The notes below the pieces were generated by a model that saw nothing but the letters and a program-made list of their open reading frames with translations, was not told the DNA's origin and did not search any database. The position numbers were made by a program, and so were the translations under genes. Positions 10,043-34,494 of a stretch of 64,000 nt of DNA are shown one piece after another. Positions within the stretch are counted from its first letter, which is position 1, and the number at the start of each line of letters is the position of its first letter. Location: the NCBI RefSeq assembly GCF_036588685.1, contig NC_086383.1, positions 17,298,001 through 17,362,000 on the forward strand. Reading direction: 5' to 3'. This stretch comes from Mytilus trossulus. Its lineage: Eukaryota.

Positions 10043-11011
10043 GTTGATTTCCGAAACTGACTTTATCTTCAGTGTGGATTTAAGTGCTTGAAGAGCAATT
10101 GTTTCTTTTTAAGTGTTTAGATCTTAAATTTTTTATGGGTTAAAACTCAAGTACGTTGGATGACAAAAAAGGTTGTTTAATCTTAGCCGCTCTGTGTTTT
10201 ATAAGCTTTGTGAACACTTGATATAAAATTTGAACCAGTGAAGTCTTGGAGTACTAAATAGCCTTAACTTGAAATGGCGGGTATGTAAAAGAATATTTTC
10301 AAACATTTTTTTTAATGTTTTTTTTTTCATATACATGTAATCATTTATCGCATTCTCATGTATTTTACACCTGTTAGAATATAGCTTTTTCTCACAGTAA
10401 ATTTGTACCACAAATATTTTTTGATGACTAAGATGTGCTTTGTTTGGTTTCCAGTTTTTTTTTTCAAAACTGAAGGTTCATCTGAACACCTGTTTTATAC
10501 TATAACGTCAAAGTCAACAACCACTTACCTAAAAGAACTTAGAACAGGATATGTCATGGTACAATCAGGATCTGAAATTTTTTGATAATTTTTCGTTTGT
10601 ACCTCTTCTCCACGAGGCTGACTTTAATTGTTTTGTACCTTAATGAGTTGAGGCTGAATTTAGTCCCCTCTGACATTGTAATACCATGATACTTTTAAGA
10701 AGGTAGAGAAAATAATGTTAAGATTTGTTCCTTGTTCAAATGTGTGAGCCTTAGCAAGGGTTACTTCCCTTGTTTTGAAATTATTAAATGATGCTTTGGT
10801 TTGTTCCAATTATATTTCAATTGGAACAAAATTTAGTTCATATGTGAGCGGAATTTGCAAGGGTTATTTCCCTTTCTTAAATTTAGTTATTCGGCTTTTA
10901 CATTCTGTAAAGGACCAAAAGGATGGTGAATTTTTCTTGGAATTAATTTAAATGAAATTTAATTTTGTAAGAGTAAGTTATTAACATATTCGTAACTTTT
11001 TTGTTTTCCAG

Positions 11012-11286
11012 GGCCGACACAGTGTCACCTCAAGTTGCAGATGTTGTTGAGAAGGTAATGTCTGAAGAGAACTCGCTGATAGAAAATCACGAAGGTTATA
11101 ATCTCTCCAACGCCAGTTTCCAGGATACCAATTCTAACTCATCTGACGATCAATCTGAATACCTGACTAACAATGTTACATCAGACTCCACAGCTACGTA
11201 CGTCAGAGATCCAAACACAGGCCACGTTACCACAATTAAGCCAGACAAAGAAGGACTTTATTTCTGCCACCTTTGCAGCTTTTCAG
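11012..11286 (+). CDS. hb: hunchback coding exon 2 (N-terminus and first half of zinc finger 1)
   Basis: Acceptor ttttttgttttccAG at 11010-11011; donor G|GTAAAT at 11287. Ends in FCHLCSFS-G, which joins exon 3 to form C-x2-C-x12-H-x3-H. Confidence 0.88.
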
Positions 11287-14009
11287 GTAAATTTTTATTA
11301 CATTACTCCTCTCTTTTTCTTCTACTGTGGATTCAATTAAAGTAGTGGGCCTTCAAATTTTTGTTCATTTTGGTGGTTAGGTCGAAGCACAAACTTAAAT
11401 GTTCAGCAAACTTCACATTTTCTATTGTCTAAGCGGAGAAAGACTGTGGCAAATTCCTTAAAAGATTTTTTCCTCAATCCAAGAAAAGACGTATCCACAA
11501 AAAAGCCAGAAAAAAAACCTAAAGCAACATGTACCTCACACACATGAATTTGTGAAAAATAGTTTTGTATTAAATAGGTTCATTTGACCACAATACTATA
11601 AGATCTATGGAAAAGTTGAGATACCAGAACAAAAGAAATCTGTTTAGAAAACAGAAACAAAAATAAGTTACATGTATTCAAGCATCTATAGTCTGGTGAA
11701 TATTTGCTCTTCTTTCAGAATTCCTTGAACTAATTTTCGCCTTATGAAACACATGTTGTTGCATAATACAACAAACCAGGTTTAATTTCAGCATAAAACA
11801 GGGCATGATTGTTCATTTTCCTAATCCCAGCAGTCGACTTATATTCCAAAATCATGTTAATTTTTCTTCTAATAAATGACAGTATTTTACCAAAGGGAAA
11901 AATATATAGCAGATAAAATGTTGATTTTATGCAGTTAATTCACTAACAAGAGTTCAAATGATTCCGAAATTATCCATAAAACATCAGGATGGCCATGTGG
12001 AGAGGTTAAAAATTAGGTCATAAATAGATATTGTTGTATAATGTTTGCTTGATAAAACCTTGTGAATAAACCATATGTTGAAAAACACGATATAACTTTG
12101 TAGATCACGGAAAGTACAAAAGTCACTTGGATAGAAAATTGTTGATCTTGTGATTGAGGGAAAGAAGGGAACACAAAAGAATAAGAAAAGTAGAATAAAG
12201 GAAGGGGGCACAGACAGGCTGGGTTCTTGGTGGCCCATTTATTAAGTTTTCATCAACATTAAAAGAGTTTAGGCAGCCTATTTTTCACAGATAGTGAACA
12301 CATTGATGTAAACAATGAAATACAGAAATATTTTGGTCACAAAATAAAATAAATATAACCTTTTAAAAAACTTGAAATTCTCACAGGTCAGCTTCAAGTC
12401 TAACAAATTTTTCGATGTGTAAATTTCAAATATTTAAAAAATATTTTGGTTGGTTTAATTTATTTCAAGTTAAAATTTATTTTCAGCATCAAATACAATA
12501 ACTTTATTTTTCTGAGGACAATTTTACCAATAATTCATTAGAAAGTAACTATTCATAAATCATTTACTACACATTAAAAATGTCCTCTCTCAGGAACAAT
12601 ATCATTATGCCATCATACTGACTAATATGGGTAGAAATTAATTCAAAAACAGAAATATGCGTATAAATGTTTTTGACATCTCAATGAACTCTTGATAGAG
12701 TCTAGCCCACGTACAATTTTGTAAAATTATACCACTTTGGGACCTCACTGATAACTTGAAACAAAAAGTCAATAAAAACACCTCTGACAAGGACGGGTCA
12801 ATTTCGTATTTATTAATTTATACAACATTTTTCAAGGTAGATTTGGTTTTTATAGCATAAAGCTTACTGCATGCATGTCCAAACTTAATTAAAAAAGAGC
12901 AGACCTTTTACGAGATCGGACATTTAAACGTGATATGTATAATATAAACGTACATGATCTTAATTGAAAAAGTTTGGATTTAATCATCGGAAATTCAATA
13001 GAATAAATATTTTGATCATTTTTTGAATGGTTCAGTACCGTTTAATAAAAACATTTTTTTATACCTTATTGCATTTTTGAATAGAGATGCACACAAATAA
13101 CTTAAAGAATTGTATAAAAAAAGAGATAAAAAACCAAGTCGTATGTAAACATGTTGTCGATCCACGTCTTAAACTGGGATGATAAAAAAAACTATAAGGT
13201 AATTTATTAAGATACTTTTAAATTAAACTTTTCCCTGTAAACAGATAAATTAAAACGAAAAAGCAAAGTAGATAAGAGGTCTTTTATGTATATTGTTTTA
13301 CACCAAAGGTCAAGTATGTGTATTGCTTTTTGTTTTTAAACTCAAGTAAAGTGTATGTAAGAATTGGACAATTTCTTTATGATCAAAGTTCATTATAAGC
13401 TTTTTAGCCTCTTTCACACATTCGTGAAATTATGAATAAGTTTATTCTTGTATCTCAATTGTATATTTCTACTTGTTAAGATAAGTGCAGTTGAACTGAA
13501 ATTATGACAAGGTCAAACGATAGATCAACATGTGATATTTTTTACGGTCATATTGTTTTTTGTTTTTCTGCTATCATCTTAGCATTAATTAATATATAAA
13601 CAGCAACACTTTTCCTTTTCGCAAAACACTCTGCATGAGAAAAAATACTCATGAGCTTTTATACTAGCTGTATCGCCAGCATTTTTGTGCAGAGATTTGT
13701 AGGGCTACTAATAAACCAGGAATCTCTTAATATCAATTATCTAGATTACAGCTAAGGGTCTGTTTTCAAAGACAGTTTGAAATTTAATAATTGGGTTTCT
13801 TCTTCAAATCTAAGGTAATTTCTTTGAATAATGAGCTATTTTGTCACCAAAAAAAAATTACAAAAGTTATACTGAAAGTTTCATCACTTTCTAAGATTTT
13901 TTGTGAGATTGGTAGCAGAGTTCATATAACTTTGGCTTTCTCAGATTCGACACAAGTCCATCAGTGACAAAAGAGGTGTCTGTCCATCCAAAGTATAAAT
14001 ATTATATGG

Positions 14010-17200: not shown

Positions 17201-18799
17201 AATTCTCTTTGATTTCTGTCACAGAAGGCTTAAGAAATAAGAAAACACCTAAGCAATGTATATGAAATCAACAAAAAAGTTTTTCATCAACAAAAGTATA
17301 ATTTAAAAGCTGATAAGAATTTTGGTCATGGTTACTTTTGACACAAACACTTCAATAAAATTTACAATAATAGACCTCAGATTTTCAAGTTATTATAAAC
17401 TTGTATAACTTTCTGTCCATTCGCATGAAAAATAAATTAAGCAGTTATAAATTACAATAATTTATAGATGGGAAACTTTATTTGTATTTGCCCGTAAAAA
17501 CTTTTAAGTATAAAACTTTACCTATGTTGACTCTAGATAACACTTATCATTGAATTTTTGATCGCTGTGGAAAGGTGCGACTCGCTGGCTATCTGTTTAA
17601 ATGACCGATTTACTGCAAATACCTAGTGATTAGTAAAATACTATATAATACCTACAAAAAATGGCTAAGGCATGTGATCTCAATTTTTATACGCCGCTTT
17701 TCTCTTCAATATCGGCAAAAAGAAAAAAAGGTTGATAGGCTGATTAACCAGTTTCCGCTACTAAAACTTGTTTTGGTTTTTAATTAAACCTCTTTGTGAA
17801 AAGTAATAATATAAAATCCAAACAAACAACATTTCTTATTTTACTATAAGTTCAGTTTAGTTAAGGGGAGACTACCCATATGAGTTTTTACACTAGATTG
17901 AATTTAGCCTCTGATTCCCATAAGTTTTTAAACAAGATATTTTGAGCTCTCTTCTTACTGTTCTATAAGTTCCTCAGAATGAAAAATAAGGCTCTAGATG
18001 TGATTAACTTTTTATTAAAAAACGAAATTCTGGTCAAATGCTAAAACAAAATGTACATATAATTTTTTTTCATCAATTATTATCTAATTTTATGGATAAA
18101 AAAGAGTTTCTATAAAAATACGTTGTAAGAATTAATACTGTTTGTTTTCGTATTTTTCAACAATGGTCATTTGGATATAACGTGAGATAAAAAGGTAAAC
18201 TGCTTTGTTTTGATTATGTACATACTAAAAGCATGCCGTAATTGGTTTTACAAATGTAAATATTTTGTTGCCTGAATTGATTTTTTCATAGTACGGCTGA
18301 ACTTTAGTCTTTTAGCTCTGACGTACTGAAAACACTTTATTTGTACTGATTTCGTCACTAATACAGTTCTATAATGAATCATGAGGGGTATAGTATGGGG
18401 TTAAAGTTTGTACAAAACTTTTTTATAAAACTATTTGATTGATCCAATTTAAGAAAACGGAATATACATGATATGATGTCATGTGATACTATAGAAATAA
18501 AAAATTGACATCTTACTTTATTTAGCATTCAATATATCACAACAATGGTAAGATTGTTTTTGTGTTGCCTCTAATTATATGCAAAAAGTGCACTTTTTTT
18601 AAAATATAGATACAATTAGAATTTGTTAGCGCCACAACATCAGAAGGGAGAAAATCCTTGAAATCAGTTTATTGAATGACTTGAAAATAAAAAAATTCAA
18701 TTCATATTCATAGGCAGCTATTTGCTTATGTTATTGAATGTTCATATTGTACATATACTATCCTACCCATTCTAATGGTTGACATTTATCTTTTTATAG

Positions 18800-19014
18800 G
18801 AAGAACCCAAGCTGATTTCGAGAATCATATGACTTGCCATTTTGAACATATTTGTCCCCACTGTGATTACAAGTCTAGAACAGAAGGCCGACTTAAGAGA
18901 CATATTAAAGATTTTCACACAGACGACCCACCAGACGGATTCGGTTCCAAAAGGAACATGGGCAGACCTAAAGTCTTCAGATGTAAACAATGTGAATTTG
19001 TTGCCACTGAAAAA
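18800..19014 (+). CDS. hb: hunchback coding exon 3 (end of finger 1, finger 2, start of finger 3)
   Basis: Acceptor tttttatAG at 18798-18799, phase 1 matching exon 2. Encodes GRTQADFENHMTCHFEHICPHCDYKSRTEGRLKRHIKDFH...FRCKQCEFVATEK; donor GTAAGT at 19015 (phase 0). Confidence 0.93.
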
Positions 19015-19532
19015 GTAAGTTTGGGAATTAAATAAGAATTGCACTAGGCAAATACTGGCTTGAATTTGTAATTCACTTGGAACCAACAAAAAATTGCATT
19101 TTATGAATGTAGCAAAAGTTATATTTGCATGAAAAACAATTTATAAAAGAAAAAGTAGATTGCCGTTGTTCAAAAGTCATAAATCATTTGAGAGAAAACA
19201 AATCTTGGTTACAAACTAAAACTAAGGGTAACACATCAACTATTAGAGGAAAACATTGGAACAACAGAAACACTGACAAACTGTAGCCAAAACAAGAAAA
19301 TATAGCAAAACATAATGAATGCATGATAGTTAATGCTATTTTAAAAAGCATGTCCTAGTAGTACACAATTATCTATTTTATATGTAAAAACAAAAAAGAG
19401 ATCTTAAAATAAACGTATGTGTCAGATTCTCTTGAAGGGTAAGCATTATACTGCAGCTTAGAAAATTATATAGTTCATATAATCTGTAAATCGATACATA
19501 TTTATATTTATGTATTTTCTTTTTTTTTTCAG

Positions 19533-21623
19533 ACTGAATTCTGGGCTCATGCTAGAGCTCACATTAAAGATGATAAAGTATTACAATGTCCACGATGTCC
19601 GTTTGTTACCGAGTATAAGCATCATTTGGAGTATCATCTTCGTAACCATTTTGGCTCAAAGCCATTCAAGTGTAACAAATGTAACTACTCATGCGTAAAC
19701 AAGTCTATGCTCAACAGCCACATGAAGTCACACACCAATGTGTATCAGTACCGATGTGCCGATTGTACGTATGCCACAAAATACTGCCACAGCCTCAAAC
19801 TTCATCTCCGTAAATATCAGCATAAACCTGCCACTGTTTTGAACTCCGATGGAAGTCTACCTCAAGGAATTGATGCTGATGCATCCGGTCTGTCATTACT
19901 TCAAAAGAGAGGTCCACCAAGAGGACCAAGAGGTCCTAGAAAGGATAAATTTGATCCGTATATGAACAGCATGTTTAATCTACCTCAGTCCCCCATTCAT
20001 GGAATGCCACCTGGAATGGGCGGAGCAATGATGTCGCCATATTGGCCATTACTCAGTCAGCTTCCGAACGGATTCCACCGCCCACCACCTCTAATTCCAA
20101 CCTCGTCACCAATGTCAATGAATCCATCAATCCATTCCCCTCAGCTACCTCAACATTTATCCTCCAAAATGGGAGCACCGAAAACTCCCGATGGAGACAA
20201 TTCTAGCAATTATCCATTTAAGTGCAATTTCTGTTGCTATGGAACCGGCAGTAAACAGGAACTATATAAACATTTAATGAAAGTTCACGCAACTGAAAAC
20301 CAGGACTTATTTTCCATGTTTGGCTTGTCCTCCGAAGCTTTACTAGAGGAACAGAACCGTAGACTCAGCCTGATGAAGCACAAAATGGAGGAGAGAAACT
20401 TAGATGATAGCTTGAATGATGAGCTTCATATACACACAGATGGTGAAGACGAGGACCAGAAATATAGTCCACATTCCTGGTCTCATCCATCACCCATTGA
20501 ACCAGCCAAGATAAATCGGAATAATGGCCGATACAGTATGCCAGAGTTGCCTGTGAATTATTACAGAAATGGAAATGCTAGTCCCAAAGATATTGGTCGG
20601 GCCGAAGGAGAAGATATCATTAAACAAATGATGAATAAATTCGGAGCTGGTTCACCCATGAATGCTGCTAGACCCAAAATGCCTCATCAACGTGAAAGCC
20701 CTCTTGACCTTACAAAGCGTAAATATCCATTCTCATCTAGTCCATTATCTCAGGAAGAAATGTACAACAGAGAAATGAATCCTGATGGTGACGCTCATTC
20801 AAGCGGGGAGAGCACAACAGCTAATGATAACAATGGCCAGAGTCCAAGAAAGAGGTCCAGAAAAGGAAAAGCTTTCAAATTAGATAGACTTTGTCTAAAA
20901 TTGCATGATAAACATGATGATGCTGAAAATGGGAGTGAAAATGAAGAGTCTGAGTTTTTAGAGAGTGAGTCTGCAGGAGACCTTCAGATTGATGAATCCA
21001 GCAACATGGATGGAGAGATGAGAAATGTAGATGAAAGAAATGAAACTGATGAAAATGGCAAAAAAGATGATGATATTGAGGAAATTAAAAATAGCCTTCA
21101 GTACCTTAATGAAGGTATGGTTAAGTCCCAAGTAGAAAAGGCACCAGAGAGAAAGTCACCCGATTCTACCAGAAATCAAAGTGGCGATGAGGTTGCTTCA
21201 AGTCAGGCTATAACTAGTAGCCAAGATGTTATTTCGTCTGCCAATCGGGAACAGGCAGAGCTGTCAATGCAGACGTCACAAGCGTTGAGACATCAAACTG
21301 AACTTGCCTGGAAGATGTTACAAAATAGTGGCAGTGGTGGACATTTTCCTTACATGTCACTGGAGCAGAATGGTCATCATCAGGATTTGGCCAAGTTAAC
21401 CACTGCGGCACAACAGATGATAGCAATGAACAATCGTAAAAGTGGACCAAACGGGAAGTATGAATGTGCCTATTGTGAAATCGCATTTAAAGACTGTGTC
21501 ATGTACACAATGCACATGGGTTACCATGGTTACAAAGATCCATTTAAGTGTAATATGTGTGGACATTGCAGCAAGGACAAAGTTGAATTCTTCCTTCATA
21601 TTGCTCGTGCCGCTCACAATTAA
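19533..21623 (+). CDS. hb: hunchback coding exon 4 (central fingers, extra finger, C-terminal finger pair)
   Basis: Acceptor poly-T-cAG at 19531-19532, in frame with ORF 19626-21623. Hunchback signatures [76 protein letters not shown] and the terminal [18 protein letters not shown]...[10 protein letters not shown]. Confidence 0.97.
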
Positions 21624-22722: not shown

Positions 22723-23912
22723 CTCAGGGAACATTATTATAAACAATTTTAATGCCATTATTTGCCAGAATTTGAGGTGCATCTGGGAAAGTTGTAATAA
22801 ATTTCTGGTACACTCAATGTGCATAGAAATTCGATCATTAAAATTAATTTTCCCTTAGTTACCTCAGATTAAATTTCATGTTCAGCATGTTATTTGCATA
22901 GATGAAATGTATATATGACAGATATTTTACAGGAAAACTTTTTTTTCTTTTTTTAATTCATCACTGCTAGTTGAGCACTTTTTATAACAATTTTCACTTT
23001 TTGCATTTTTAACAGTCGGGTGCTTTGCATTTGTAGTGCTATACATTTTTCATTTTTTGAGCGACTTTCATATAGAACACTTTCCCAATCTGATTATTAC
23101 CATTCTTTTCTCTATAAAAATGGATAATTGGGAAGTGAAGAAGGCATTTTTTTCAAAAAAGGGGATTAATTTTACAAAAGATCTTCTAACTTAAAAAATC
23201 TAATCATACTGAAATTTGTAACTACGCAGATGAAGACACAAATTTTGAATACGCATTTTGAACTGTTCATTTCTACATAACTTTTGATTGCAACGGTTCA
23301 GCCTATATTTTCAACCAGAAAGAATCATTTTAATATAAAGAATGAAATAGATATATAACAAATGATTTGATTGGGGTAAAGAATTCAAATGATAACTACC
23401 AAAGTCTATAAATAGATCTCAGGTTTCTAGTATTTGTTCATTCCCACACTGAGCTATAAGTGAAAAATATTCCAAGTTACTTTTGAAAAAAGAATGAAAT
23501 CCTAAATAGAATGATGCTCAATAATTACTACATGTTTTTTTTTAATGTGCAATTAATTAGATTAGTATAATATATTTAGTGAAAATAGAATAGTTATTTA
23601 ATTGGGTCATCTCAAAGCTACTAAAGCCATCTAAAGACAGGTAGTTTTATCACTCCTGCAAATCCCATGAGCAGTTTCTAAAAAAAAATCTTATTCAAAC
23701 GTAAACTTTAGCCTGAGATGATCAATCAAGCACAATTCAGGATTTTTGAGATGACCCTCTGATTAGTTAGATATATACACATTAAAATGACGGAATTCCA
23801 GTGAGGAAAAATTTAAAACTGTACTGATACGTCCTGATCACATCCTCATTGATTTAATTCAGGAATATATTAGACGACAGTATGTTATATATACCTCAGT
23901 CAAACTACCTCA
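22723..23912 (+). promoter_or_regulatory. miRNA seed sites in the putative hb 3' UTR (miR-125/lin-4 8mer; let-7 7mer-A1 x2 and 8mer)
   Basis: CTCAGGGA 22723-22730; TACCTCA 22860-22866 and 23892-23898; CTACCTCA 23905-23912. UTR extent is not known; AATAAA candidates near 23923 and 24861. Confidence 0.6.
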
Positions 23913-23959
23913 GATTTGTACAAATAAAACAGCATCTTACAGATTCTAGATACATGATA

Positions 23960-31891: not shown

Positions 31892-32020
31892 ATAAAAAAA
31901 AGATGTGGTTTGATTGCCAATGAGACAACTCGCCACAAGATACCAAAAACGACACAGAAATTAACAACTACAGGTCACCGCACGGCCTTCAACAATGAGC
32001 AAAGCCCATATCTCAGAGTG
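31892..32020 (+). repeat. Dispersed repeat family (AAGATGTGGTATGATTGCCAATGAGACAAC type)
   Basis: The same sequence occurs in reverse orientation at ~34370-34494 and ~50340-50456. Confidence 0.75.
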
Positions 32021-32814
32021 AGCTGATTGGACTCTAAATTTATCAAAAATTACCTCGACCAAAAAAGTTAACCTGAAGCGGGACAGACGGACAAACAGAC
32101 GAACGGACGAACAAACGAACGAACAGACGCACAGACCAGAAAACCTAATGCCCATAAAAGGGGCATAAAATACAAACACAAAAAAAATTAAAAAAATTAA
32201 AAAAAAAAAACATACAACGTAACCTAGATGAAAACATTATATCATTGTAACATAGAACAAAAAGGACAAAATGGAGGGAGGTTAGGAACCATTATAGTAT
32301 ACAACATTGAGTTTGTTGTAATATAACGACAGTATCGGAACTAGGGGACAAAGGCCGCCGCCCTGTTATAAAACTTTACGTATATTCTAGTTTATTGAAT
32401 GCGTATACTGCTTACAGGTATCACACTAAACGTTCCCGGCTTGACAGGTGCCCCCATCGCTTTATCAAAACCATGGTTCCGCACCAGTATGTAGCAATGG
32501 AGAGTACAACATTAAAGGATAATACTAAAGGTAATTTAGGGATATGTTATTGTGGTGATAATAAGACTAGGGACCATTATAGTAAAAAAAAACTTGGTTG
32601 ATTTTACATGAAAGAAGTTACACGGGGTGCTCATTTTCAAATTTCCGCTGTTGTACTTGTTTGACTTTATAACTATTTTGATCTGAGCGTCACTAATGAG
32701 GCTGCCGTATTCAATCATAATTCTGGAACCTTTGATAACTATTTTTAATGTTATCTCACAAACCTCTTTTTCTTTCTTTTTCCAAGATTACGTTTTCTTA
32801 TATTCTTTTTTATA

Positions 32815-33650
32815 ACCACCTCTATATCCCAAATACCCTTTTCTTACCCCTTATATATCACATGCCTACATTTTAAACCCTCTATCTCATATACCAACTT
32901 CTTACCCCTCATATATCTCATGCCCACTTTTTACCTCCTCTATCTCATATACCCACTATTTACCCCTCATCTCTCACAAGCAACTTTTTACCTCCTCTAT
33001 CTCATATACCTACTTCTTACCCCTCATAGCTCACAAGCAACTTTTTACCTCCTCTATCTCATATACCCACTTCTTATCCCTCATAGCTCACATGCCACTT
33101 TTTACCTCCTCTATCTCATTTACCCACTTCTTACCCCTCAAAGCTCACATGCCACTTTTTACCTCCTCTATCTCATATACCAACTTCTTACCCCCCATAG
33201 CTCACATGCCACTTTTTACCTTTTCTATCTTATATACCCACTTTTTACCCCTTATATCTCACATGCCCATTTTTACCTCCTCTATCTCACATACCCTATT
33301 CTTACCCCTTATATATCACATGCATACATTTTAAACCCTCTATCTCATATACCCACTTCTTACCCCTCATATCTCTCATGCCCACATTTTACCTCCTCTA
33401 TCTCATTTACCCACTTTTTACCCCTCATATCTTACATGCCCATTTTTTACCTCCTCTATCTCATATACCCACTTCTTACCCCTCATAGCTCACATGCCAC
33501 TTTTTACCTCCTCTATCTCATTTACCCACTTCTTACCCCGTATATCTCACGTGCCCACTTTTTACCTCCTCTATCTCATATACCCACTTCTTATCCCTTA
33601 TATCTCATGTACCCACTTTTTACCTCCTATATCTTACACCCCCCACTTCT
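32815..33650. repeat. 57-bp pyrimidine-rich minisatellite (~14 units)
   Basis: Unit ~TTTTTACCTCCTCTATCTCATATACCCACTTCTTACCCCTCATAGCTCACATGCCAC; produces the 19-aa-periodic spurious ORF 32920-33699. Confidence 0.93.
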
Positions 33651-33879
33651 TTTGCCACTAGATCCTGCTCCCCAGAATTGTGTCATCCCACTTGCCTGAA
33701 ATGAGGGTTTACTTAGACAGTCCACTTTTCACTATATAACTCATCGTTTTTTTAGTCAAACACAATCATTGATATAAAGTTTATATTCCCTAATGTCCAT
33801 TTCAGAGCATTACACATGGACCACTTTTGATATTGTATCGCAGTTTAACAAACAATCTTTTTAAAAGAGTTTTTTTCTC

Positions 33880-34494
33880 TGGCTGTTTATGACGTTTTGA
33901 CACTAAATCCATTGGATGTTGGATGTATACGGATTGATAGTTTAGTCTTAGATGCATGATTTGTTTTATTAGTTGTTAGTGGATTTGAACTAGCTGTCAG
34001 ATAACTGCTAGTACTCTCAGATCTGTTCATTGTGTCGGGATGTATAAGTACCCGGCCACGTCCACTTGTATTTTTGTCCATCTGATGAGTTAAGCCTTTT
34101 CAACTGATTTATATAGTTTGTTCTTATGTTGTACTGTTATATCACTGTCCCAGGTTAGGGGGAGGGTTGGGATCCCGCTAACATGTTTAACCCGTCACAT
34201 TATTTATGTATGTGCCTGTCCCAAGTCAGGAGTCTGTAATTCAGTGGTTGTCGTTTGTTTATGTGTTACATGTCTGTTTTTCGTTCATTTTTTTTTACAT
34301 AAATAGGGCCGTTAGTTTTCTCTTTTGAATTGTTTTACATTGTCTTATCGGGTTTTTTTATAGCTGACTATGTGGTATGGGCTTTGTTCATTGTTGAAGG
34401 CCGTACGGTGACCTATAGTTGTTAATGTCCGTGTCATTTTGGTCTTTTGGATAGTTATCTCATTGGCAATCATACCACATCTTCTTTTTTATAT
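33880..34494 (-). repeat. Longer copy of the dispersed repeat family
   Basis: Ends in CATTGGCAATCATACCACATCTTCTTTTTTATATT, the reverse complement of the copy at 31892; internal blocks are shared with 50228-50456. Confidence 0.7.

Follow-up and report, generated by a model that had tools for sequence, protein, structure and literature searches.

Three in-frame let-7 8mer sites in the last coding exon of the Mytilus trossulus hunchback gene

The last coding exon of the hunchback gene of the mussel Mytilus trossulus carries three perfect let-7 8mer sites, each of which is written in frame as the Leu-Pro-Gln codons CTA-CCT-CAR. As judged from the sequence, and with a probability of roughly 0.5, we read them as let-7 sites of the mussel lineage that came about by codon choice and that would add modestly to a repression based on the 3′UTR. 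The gene lies in a stretch of 64,000 nucleotides, which will be referred to as the window; unless stated otherwise, all coordinates refer to it.

The mussel hunchback gene, its let-7 sites and the let-7 precursor

The first-pass annotation had named the gene hunchback, and this identification was confirmed. Translation of the exon (19533-21620) gives a sequence with 100% identity to isoform X3 of LOC134690799, whose 90% cluster includes members in M. galloprovincialis and M. edulis named hunchback or HB. Farther relatives with the name hunchback were found in oyster, abalone, scallop, phoronid, brachiopod and annelid. The last exon encodes the middle zinc fingers 2-4, a linker and two C-terminal fingers, and C2H2 fingers were found in its product by Pfam. 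The middle-finger block and the two C-terminal fingers both show the invariant finger columns, which together with orthology to the named hunchback proteins makes the gene a member of this family. The following coding exons were located in the window:

About 11010..11291, + strand: upstream hunchback coding exon, P0001 residues 215-308, without a let-7 site
18793..19017, + strand: upstream hunchback coding exon, P0001 residues 305-379, without a let-7 site
19533..21623, + strand: last hunchback coding exon, P0001 residues 378-1074 (tblastn, 99.9% identity), stop codon TAA

The exons were analysed individually and not as a joined spliced model. The first ~214 residues of isoform X3 were searched for in the window and not found. 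A search of the assembly for a second hunchback copy or a haplotig yielded none, and the gene is single copy.

The octamer CTACCTCA is present at three positions of the last exon, where it encodes Leu-Pro-Gln as CTA-CCT-CAR:

19857..19864, + strand: let-7 8mer site 1, CTA-CCT-CA(A), in frame, LPQ in DGSLPQG
19980..19987, + strand: let-7 8mer site 2, CTA-CCT-CA(G), in frame, LPQ in FNLPQS
20145..20152, + strand: let-7 8mer site 3, CTA-CCT-CA(A), in frame, LPQ in PQLPQH

Coordinates and reading frame agree exactly with the first-pass annotation, which had reported three perfect 8mers in synonymous positions. On the sense strand of the mRNA, each site matches positions 2-8 of the microRNA and has an A opposite position 1, as is characteristic of a canonical 8mer. 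Site 1 starts 19 codons past KYCHSLKLH, a motif in the last of the middle zinc fingers, the sites are spaced by 123 and 165 nt, and the stop codon follows at a distance of 1.5-1.8 kb. The exon contains no LPQ tripeptides other than these three, and its two remaining Leu-Pro pairs are encoded by CTT-CCG and TTG-CCT. Internal duplication was considered as the origin of the three sites and was ruled out, as their flanks are without mutual similarity. Seed sites for miR-125 or miR-100 were also sought in the hunchback coding exon, and none were found.

Additional let-7 sites, amounting to one 8mer and two 7mer-A1 sites, were detected downstream of the stop codon in the probable 3′UTR:

22860..22866, + strand: let-7 7mer-A1 (TACCTCA), probable 3′UTR
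23892..23912, + strand: paired let-7 sites, a 7mer-A1 at 23892 and an 8mer at 23905, with starts 13 nt apart, probable 3′UTR

An AATAAA at 23923 follows shortly after the paired sites. The probable hunchback 3′UTR also contains an 8mer for miR-125/lin-4, CTCAGGGA, at 22723-22730 (+).

That the genome encodes a canonical let-7 was likewise confirmed. A single let-7 precursor in the assembly scored above the Rfam cut-off (RF00027, 62.1 vs 53.5 bits; G000:C6:4079147-4079225, minus strand), and its mature product is the canonical let-7 22-mer, which starts with TGAGGTAG. On the same strand, ~1.05 kb upstream of the precursor, lies a mir-10-family hairpin (61.6 bits); adjacency of miR-100 and let-7 is the usual conserved arrangement of this cluster. 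The two hairpins have the following positions:

L063:1501-1579 and L063:2629-2699 (G000:C6, about 4.079 Mb), minus strand: let-7 precursor and mir-10-family hairpin, respectively

Codon choice at the three sites

The first-pass annotation had considered the codon choice unlikely by chance, and its rough figure of (1/24)^3 turned out to be close to the measured (0.036)^3. Codon-preserving shuffling of the last exon produced at least three sites in 17 of 200,000 trials (P = 8.5 × 10−5), and with genome codon frequencies 0.117 8mers are expected in the protein with P(at least three) = 8.1 × 10−5, both values referring to a find that was made post hoc while a very large number of windows was scanned. 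The protein offers four positions at which the 8mer could be encoded at all, namely the three LPQ tripeptides and one PTS. LPQ itself is one of five tripeptides seen at least three times, against an expectation of 0.16.

The genome codon frequencies were taken from 70 intronless GPCR ORFs of the same assembly, comprising 27,931 codons. Here, CTA accounts for 12.5% of the Leu codons and CCT for 28.3% of the Pro codons. The combination CTA-CCT was used in only one of 136 Leu-Pro pairs and in none of the 15 Leu-Pro-Gln/His triplets, and CTACCTCA was completely absent from the 84-86 kb of GPCR control ORFs. Dominance of CTA-CCT among Leu-Pro pairs, which the first-pass annotation had named as one of the findings that would undo its claim, is therefore not observed, and a favoured codon pair was rejected as the explanation.

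The octamer is also overrepresented in the window as a whole. On both strands taken together, six copies of CTACCTCA were observed compared to 0.71 expected, a number reached in none of 100 dinucleotide shuffles, and four of the six copies are located on the sense strand of the hunchback transcript unit. When 420 8-mers of equal base composition were compared, CTACCTCA alone reached three copies in the exon (mean 0.05), with the caveat that five different 8-mers are present there three times. Triples as such are thus not rare in this exon, and the improbable part is the identity of the triple as the let-7 8mer.

A search of the whole genome for 8mer triplets with gaps within 200 nt returned 1,083 matches compared to 496 for the reversed control. 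Among the matches listed, all triplets fall into two satellite arrays, and consequently they are of no use as a null for unique sequence. These arrays (G000:C1:37059954-37062781 and G000:C1:72964829-72976925) consist of units of ~74 and ~173 nt with one CTACCTCA per unit. Within the window, the shorter motif TACCTC is repeated at ~57 nt (57-58 nt with two larger gaps) from 32932 to 33621 (+), indicating a tandem repeat, and this stretch is situated in a region of strong negative GC skew (−0.40 over 32001-34000).

The serious rival to let-7 sites that modestly reinforce a 3′UTR-based repression is coincidence, to which we assign a substantial though minor share of the probability. According to this explanation, the LPQ tripeptides are present for reasons of the protein and share CTA-CCT by chance; let-7 may touch the sites, which however would not be maintained for let-7. 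The five 8-mers present three times in the exon speak for it, as does the very large number of windows scanned, among which events of the order of 10−4 are expected somewhere. Against it stand the P values of about 8 × 10−5, obtained with two independent codon nulls for a single microRNA/target pair given a priori, and the rarity of CTA-CCT genome-wide.

The octamer might also be constrained for a reason other than let-7, such as recognition by another RNA-binding factor, splicing signals in the exon, translational pausing at the rare CTA or an element acting at the DNA level. CTA is indeed a minority Leu codon and CTA-CCT a rare pair, and in the transcript unit the seed site is followed by G in four of six cases, with TACCTCAG occurring four times. 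We nevertheless regard such a constraint as improbable, since no known factor matches the octamer, the motif corresponds exactly to the let-7 8mer, down to the A facing position 1, alternative splicing is not needed in this terminal exon, and the flanks of the three sites do not resemble one another.

Hunchback sequences of other animals

Protein alignments showed that the three peptides differ in their distribution. DGSLPQG at site 1 is invariant in all molluscs of the alignment (21 of 21); the phoronid, the brachiopods and the annelid lack it. The peptide FNLPQS is confined to mytilids and Haliotis, the latter reading FHLPQS, and QLPQH to Mytilus plus one further cluster of mytilids; in a third mytilid, QIPHH stands in its place. 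As this region of hunchback (130 residues) is near-invariant as protein in mytilids, conservation of the peptides is uninformative about the RNA, a point that we count in favour of coincidence.

Codon usage was compared with two heterodont clams that possess DGSLPQG and represent the sole non-mytilid molluscs with DNA for this comparison, which covers site 1. The LPQ of this peptide is encoded by TTA-CCA-CAA in one of them (L002) and by CTC-CCG-CAG in the other (L041). No let-7 7mer or 8mer was found in the coding sequence of the two clams scanned downstream of KYCHSLKLH, and a let-7 8mer is present in the 3′ flank of L002. At site 1, the peptide is thus constrained by the protein, and bivalves do not have its let-7 spelling in common; preferential conservation of the 8mer in orthologues is not seen in these two species. 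The first-pass annotation had suggested that the LPQ peptides exist partly because the RNA needs let-7 sites. For site 1 this idea had to be abandoned, since the peptide is invariant throughout the molluscs aligned and the clams spell it with other codons. Other codons in orthologues are among the findings that the first-pass annotation had itself named as refuting its claim, and for site 1 this holds at least at the level of Bivalvia. A peptide conserved across Mollusca for the protein, with codons that vary between bivalves, is also what coincidence would predict.

A metagenome scan yielded 62 hunchback loci in 40 distinct groups; none of them is a mytilid locus spanning the three sites, and L058-L061 begin past site 3. 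Bacterial genomes and viral contigs were searched as well, and no hunchback was found in them. Within homology-bounded coding sequence of the 40 groups (46 kb), the let-7 8mer occurred twice compared to a mean of 1.03 (rank 73 of 420), which is not significant. With ORFs extended (53 kb), five copies were counted compared to 1.36 (rank 20 of 420), one of the five (L049) being probably intronic, so that no clear excess emerged. Each of the 40 other hunchback loci has at most one copy in its coding sequence. A general excess of coding let-7 8mers in hunchback is thus not evident, which again is in line with coincidence. One copy belongs to the arthropod-like locus L003 (1047-1054), in which an in-frame LPQ is likewise written as CTACCTCA, 195 nt past the last middle finger, at about the same distance as mussel site 2; this single case is not significant.

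The 3′ flanks of 28 distinct hunchback loci (40 kb) were analysed in the same way. Four let-7 8mers were found there compared to a mean of 0.46, ranking first of 420 composition-matched 8-mers, and this enrichment would fit hunchback as a let-7 target well beyond nematodes. The same 8mer is enriched both in the mussel mRNA and in other hunchback 3′ flanks, which argues against coincidence. Let-7 8mers just past the hunchback stop codon were noted in the unrelated taxa L004, L024, L059/L060 and L002, with two within 360 nt in L059.

An ancient dual-coded module, in which coding let-7 sites were kept across molluscs or lophotrochozoans and the peptides were shaped by the need of the RNA, could account for the invariant site-1 peptide in molluscs and for the LPQ codons of L003, but is very improbable, because the two clams use other site-1 codons and are devoid of let-7 7mers and 8mers in the coding sequence scanned, the peptides of sites 2 and 3 are missing outside mytilids save for Haliotis at site 2, the coding sequences of the 40 loci lack enrichment, and, as far as site 1 is concerned, such antiquity is already contradicted within Bivalvia.

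Proposed role of the sites and comparison with known let-7 targets

The immediate surroundings of the three sites were characterized with respect to pairing and accessibility. 3′ supplementary pairing to let-7 was no better at any of the three than for shuffled upstream sequence. High accessibility was first entertained as evidence and then discarded, as it was seen against all coding windows and was gone against G-free windows; compared with other G-free 8-mer windows, the predicted accessibility is unremarkable (percentiles 0.38, 0.68 and 0.91). The lack of both signals counts on the side of coincidence. The wide spacing of the three sites and their distance from the stop codon likewise weigh against our preferred reading.

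Our preferred reading remains that of mussel-lineage sites that support a repression exerted through the 3′UTR. On this view, the choice of codons at Leu-Pro-Gln tripeptides would have given rise to the three 8mers in the mussel lineage. From the onset of let-7 expression, Argonaute loaded with let-7 would seed-pair with the ORF sites and with the three 3′UTR sites, and the ORF sites would add a modest repression to the level set by the 3′UTR, so that Hunchback would be switched off at a more sharply defined time. Binding and repression, like selection acting at the synonymous positions or a part in the developmental timing of a mollusc, are what we infer here. A further-reaching version, which we put forward tentatively and with somewhat less than even odds, is that the codons of one ancient, protein-constrained LPQ and of two younger LPQs were recruited into a three-site let-7 module that cooperates with the 3′UTR. 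This module might constitute a dual-coded, lineage-specific reinforcement of an ancient protostome timing link between let-7 and hunchback. The mussel sites are, in any case, a plausible but unproven addition of one lineage to the older let-7/hunchback link.

If functional, the sites would carry over to molluscs the pairing of let-7 with hunchback that is known from developmental timing in nematodes, and would provide a clean natural case of microRNA sites in synonymous codons. They would further indicate that a peptide kept for other reasons can acquire such sites in addition. The concept as such is already established by the let-7 coding sites of Dicer, by the use of ORF 8mers in target prediction and by the pair hbl-1/let-7, and the advance is therefore moderate. 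A search of the open-access literature retrieved no paper joining let-7, hunchback and bivalves.

The let-7 family represses the hunchback-like gene hbl-1 of Caenorhabditis elegans through 3′UTR sites as part of the heterochronic pathway. The mussel case involves the same microRNA and an orthologous target, the probable 3′UTR of which also contains let-7 sites; it differs in that the sites in question are coding and belong to a mollusc, a group in which we know of no timing role of hunchback or let-7.

With respect to position within the message, most canonical ORF sites are weak since ribosomes displace the complex (PMC4532895). Among them, 8mer-type sites alone contribute measurably alongside 3′UTR sites, as included in the TargetScan context++ model (Agarwal et al. 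2015, PMC4532895). All three mussel sites are of this 8mer type, whereas the TargetScan effect is a modest statistical one, derived from mammalian cells, and is silent on selection or on molluscs.

A close parallel is Dicer, in which let-7 is reported to target sites inside the coding region (Forman, Legesse-Miller and Coller 2008, as cited in PMC4482082). The Dicer sites were reportedly found by cross-species conservation and tested experimentally, whereas the mussel sites are read from the sequence, and site 1 is unconserved in two clams. Common to both genes is that let-7 seed sites overlap codons of the ORF and that the same mRNA additionally carries let-7 sites in its 3′UTR, which in the mussel is a probable one.
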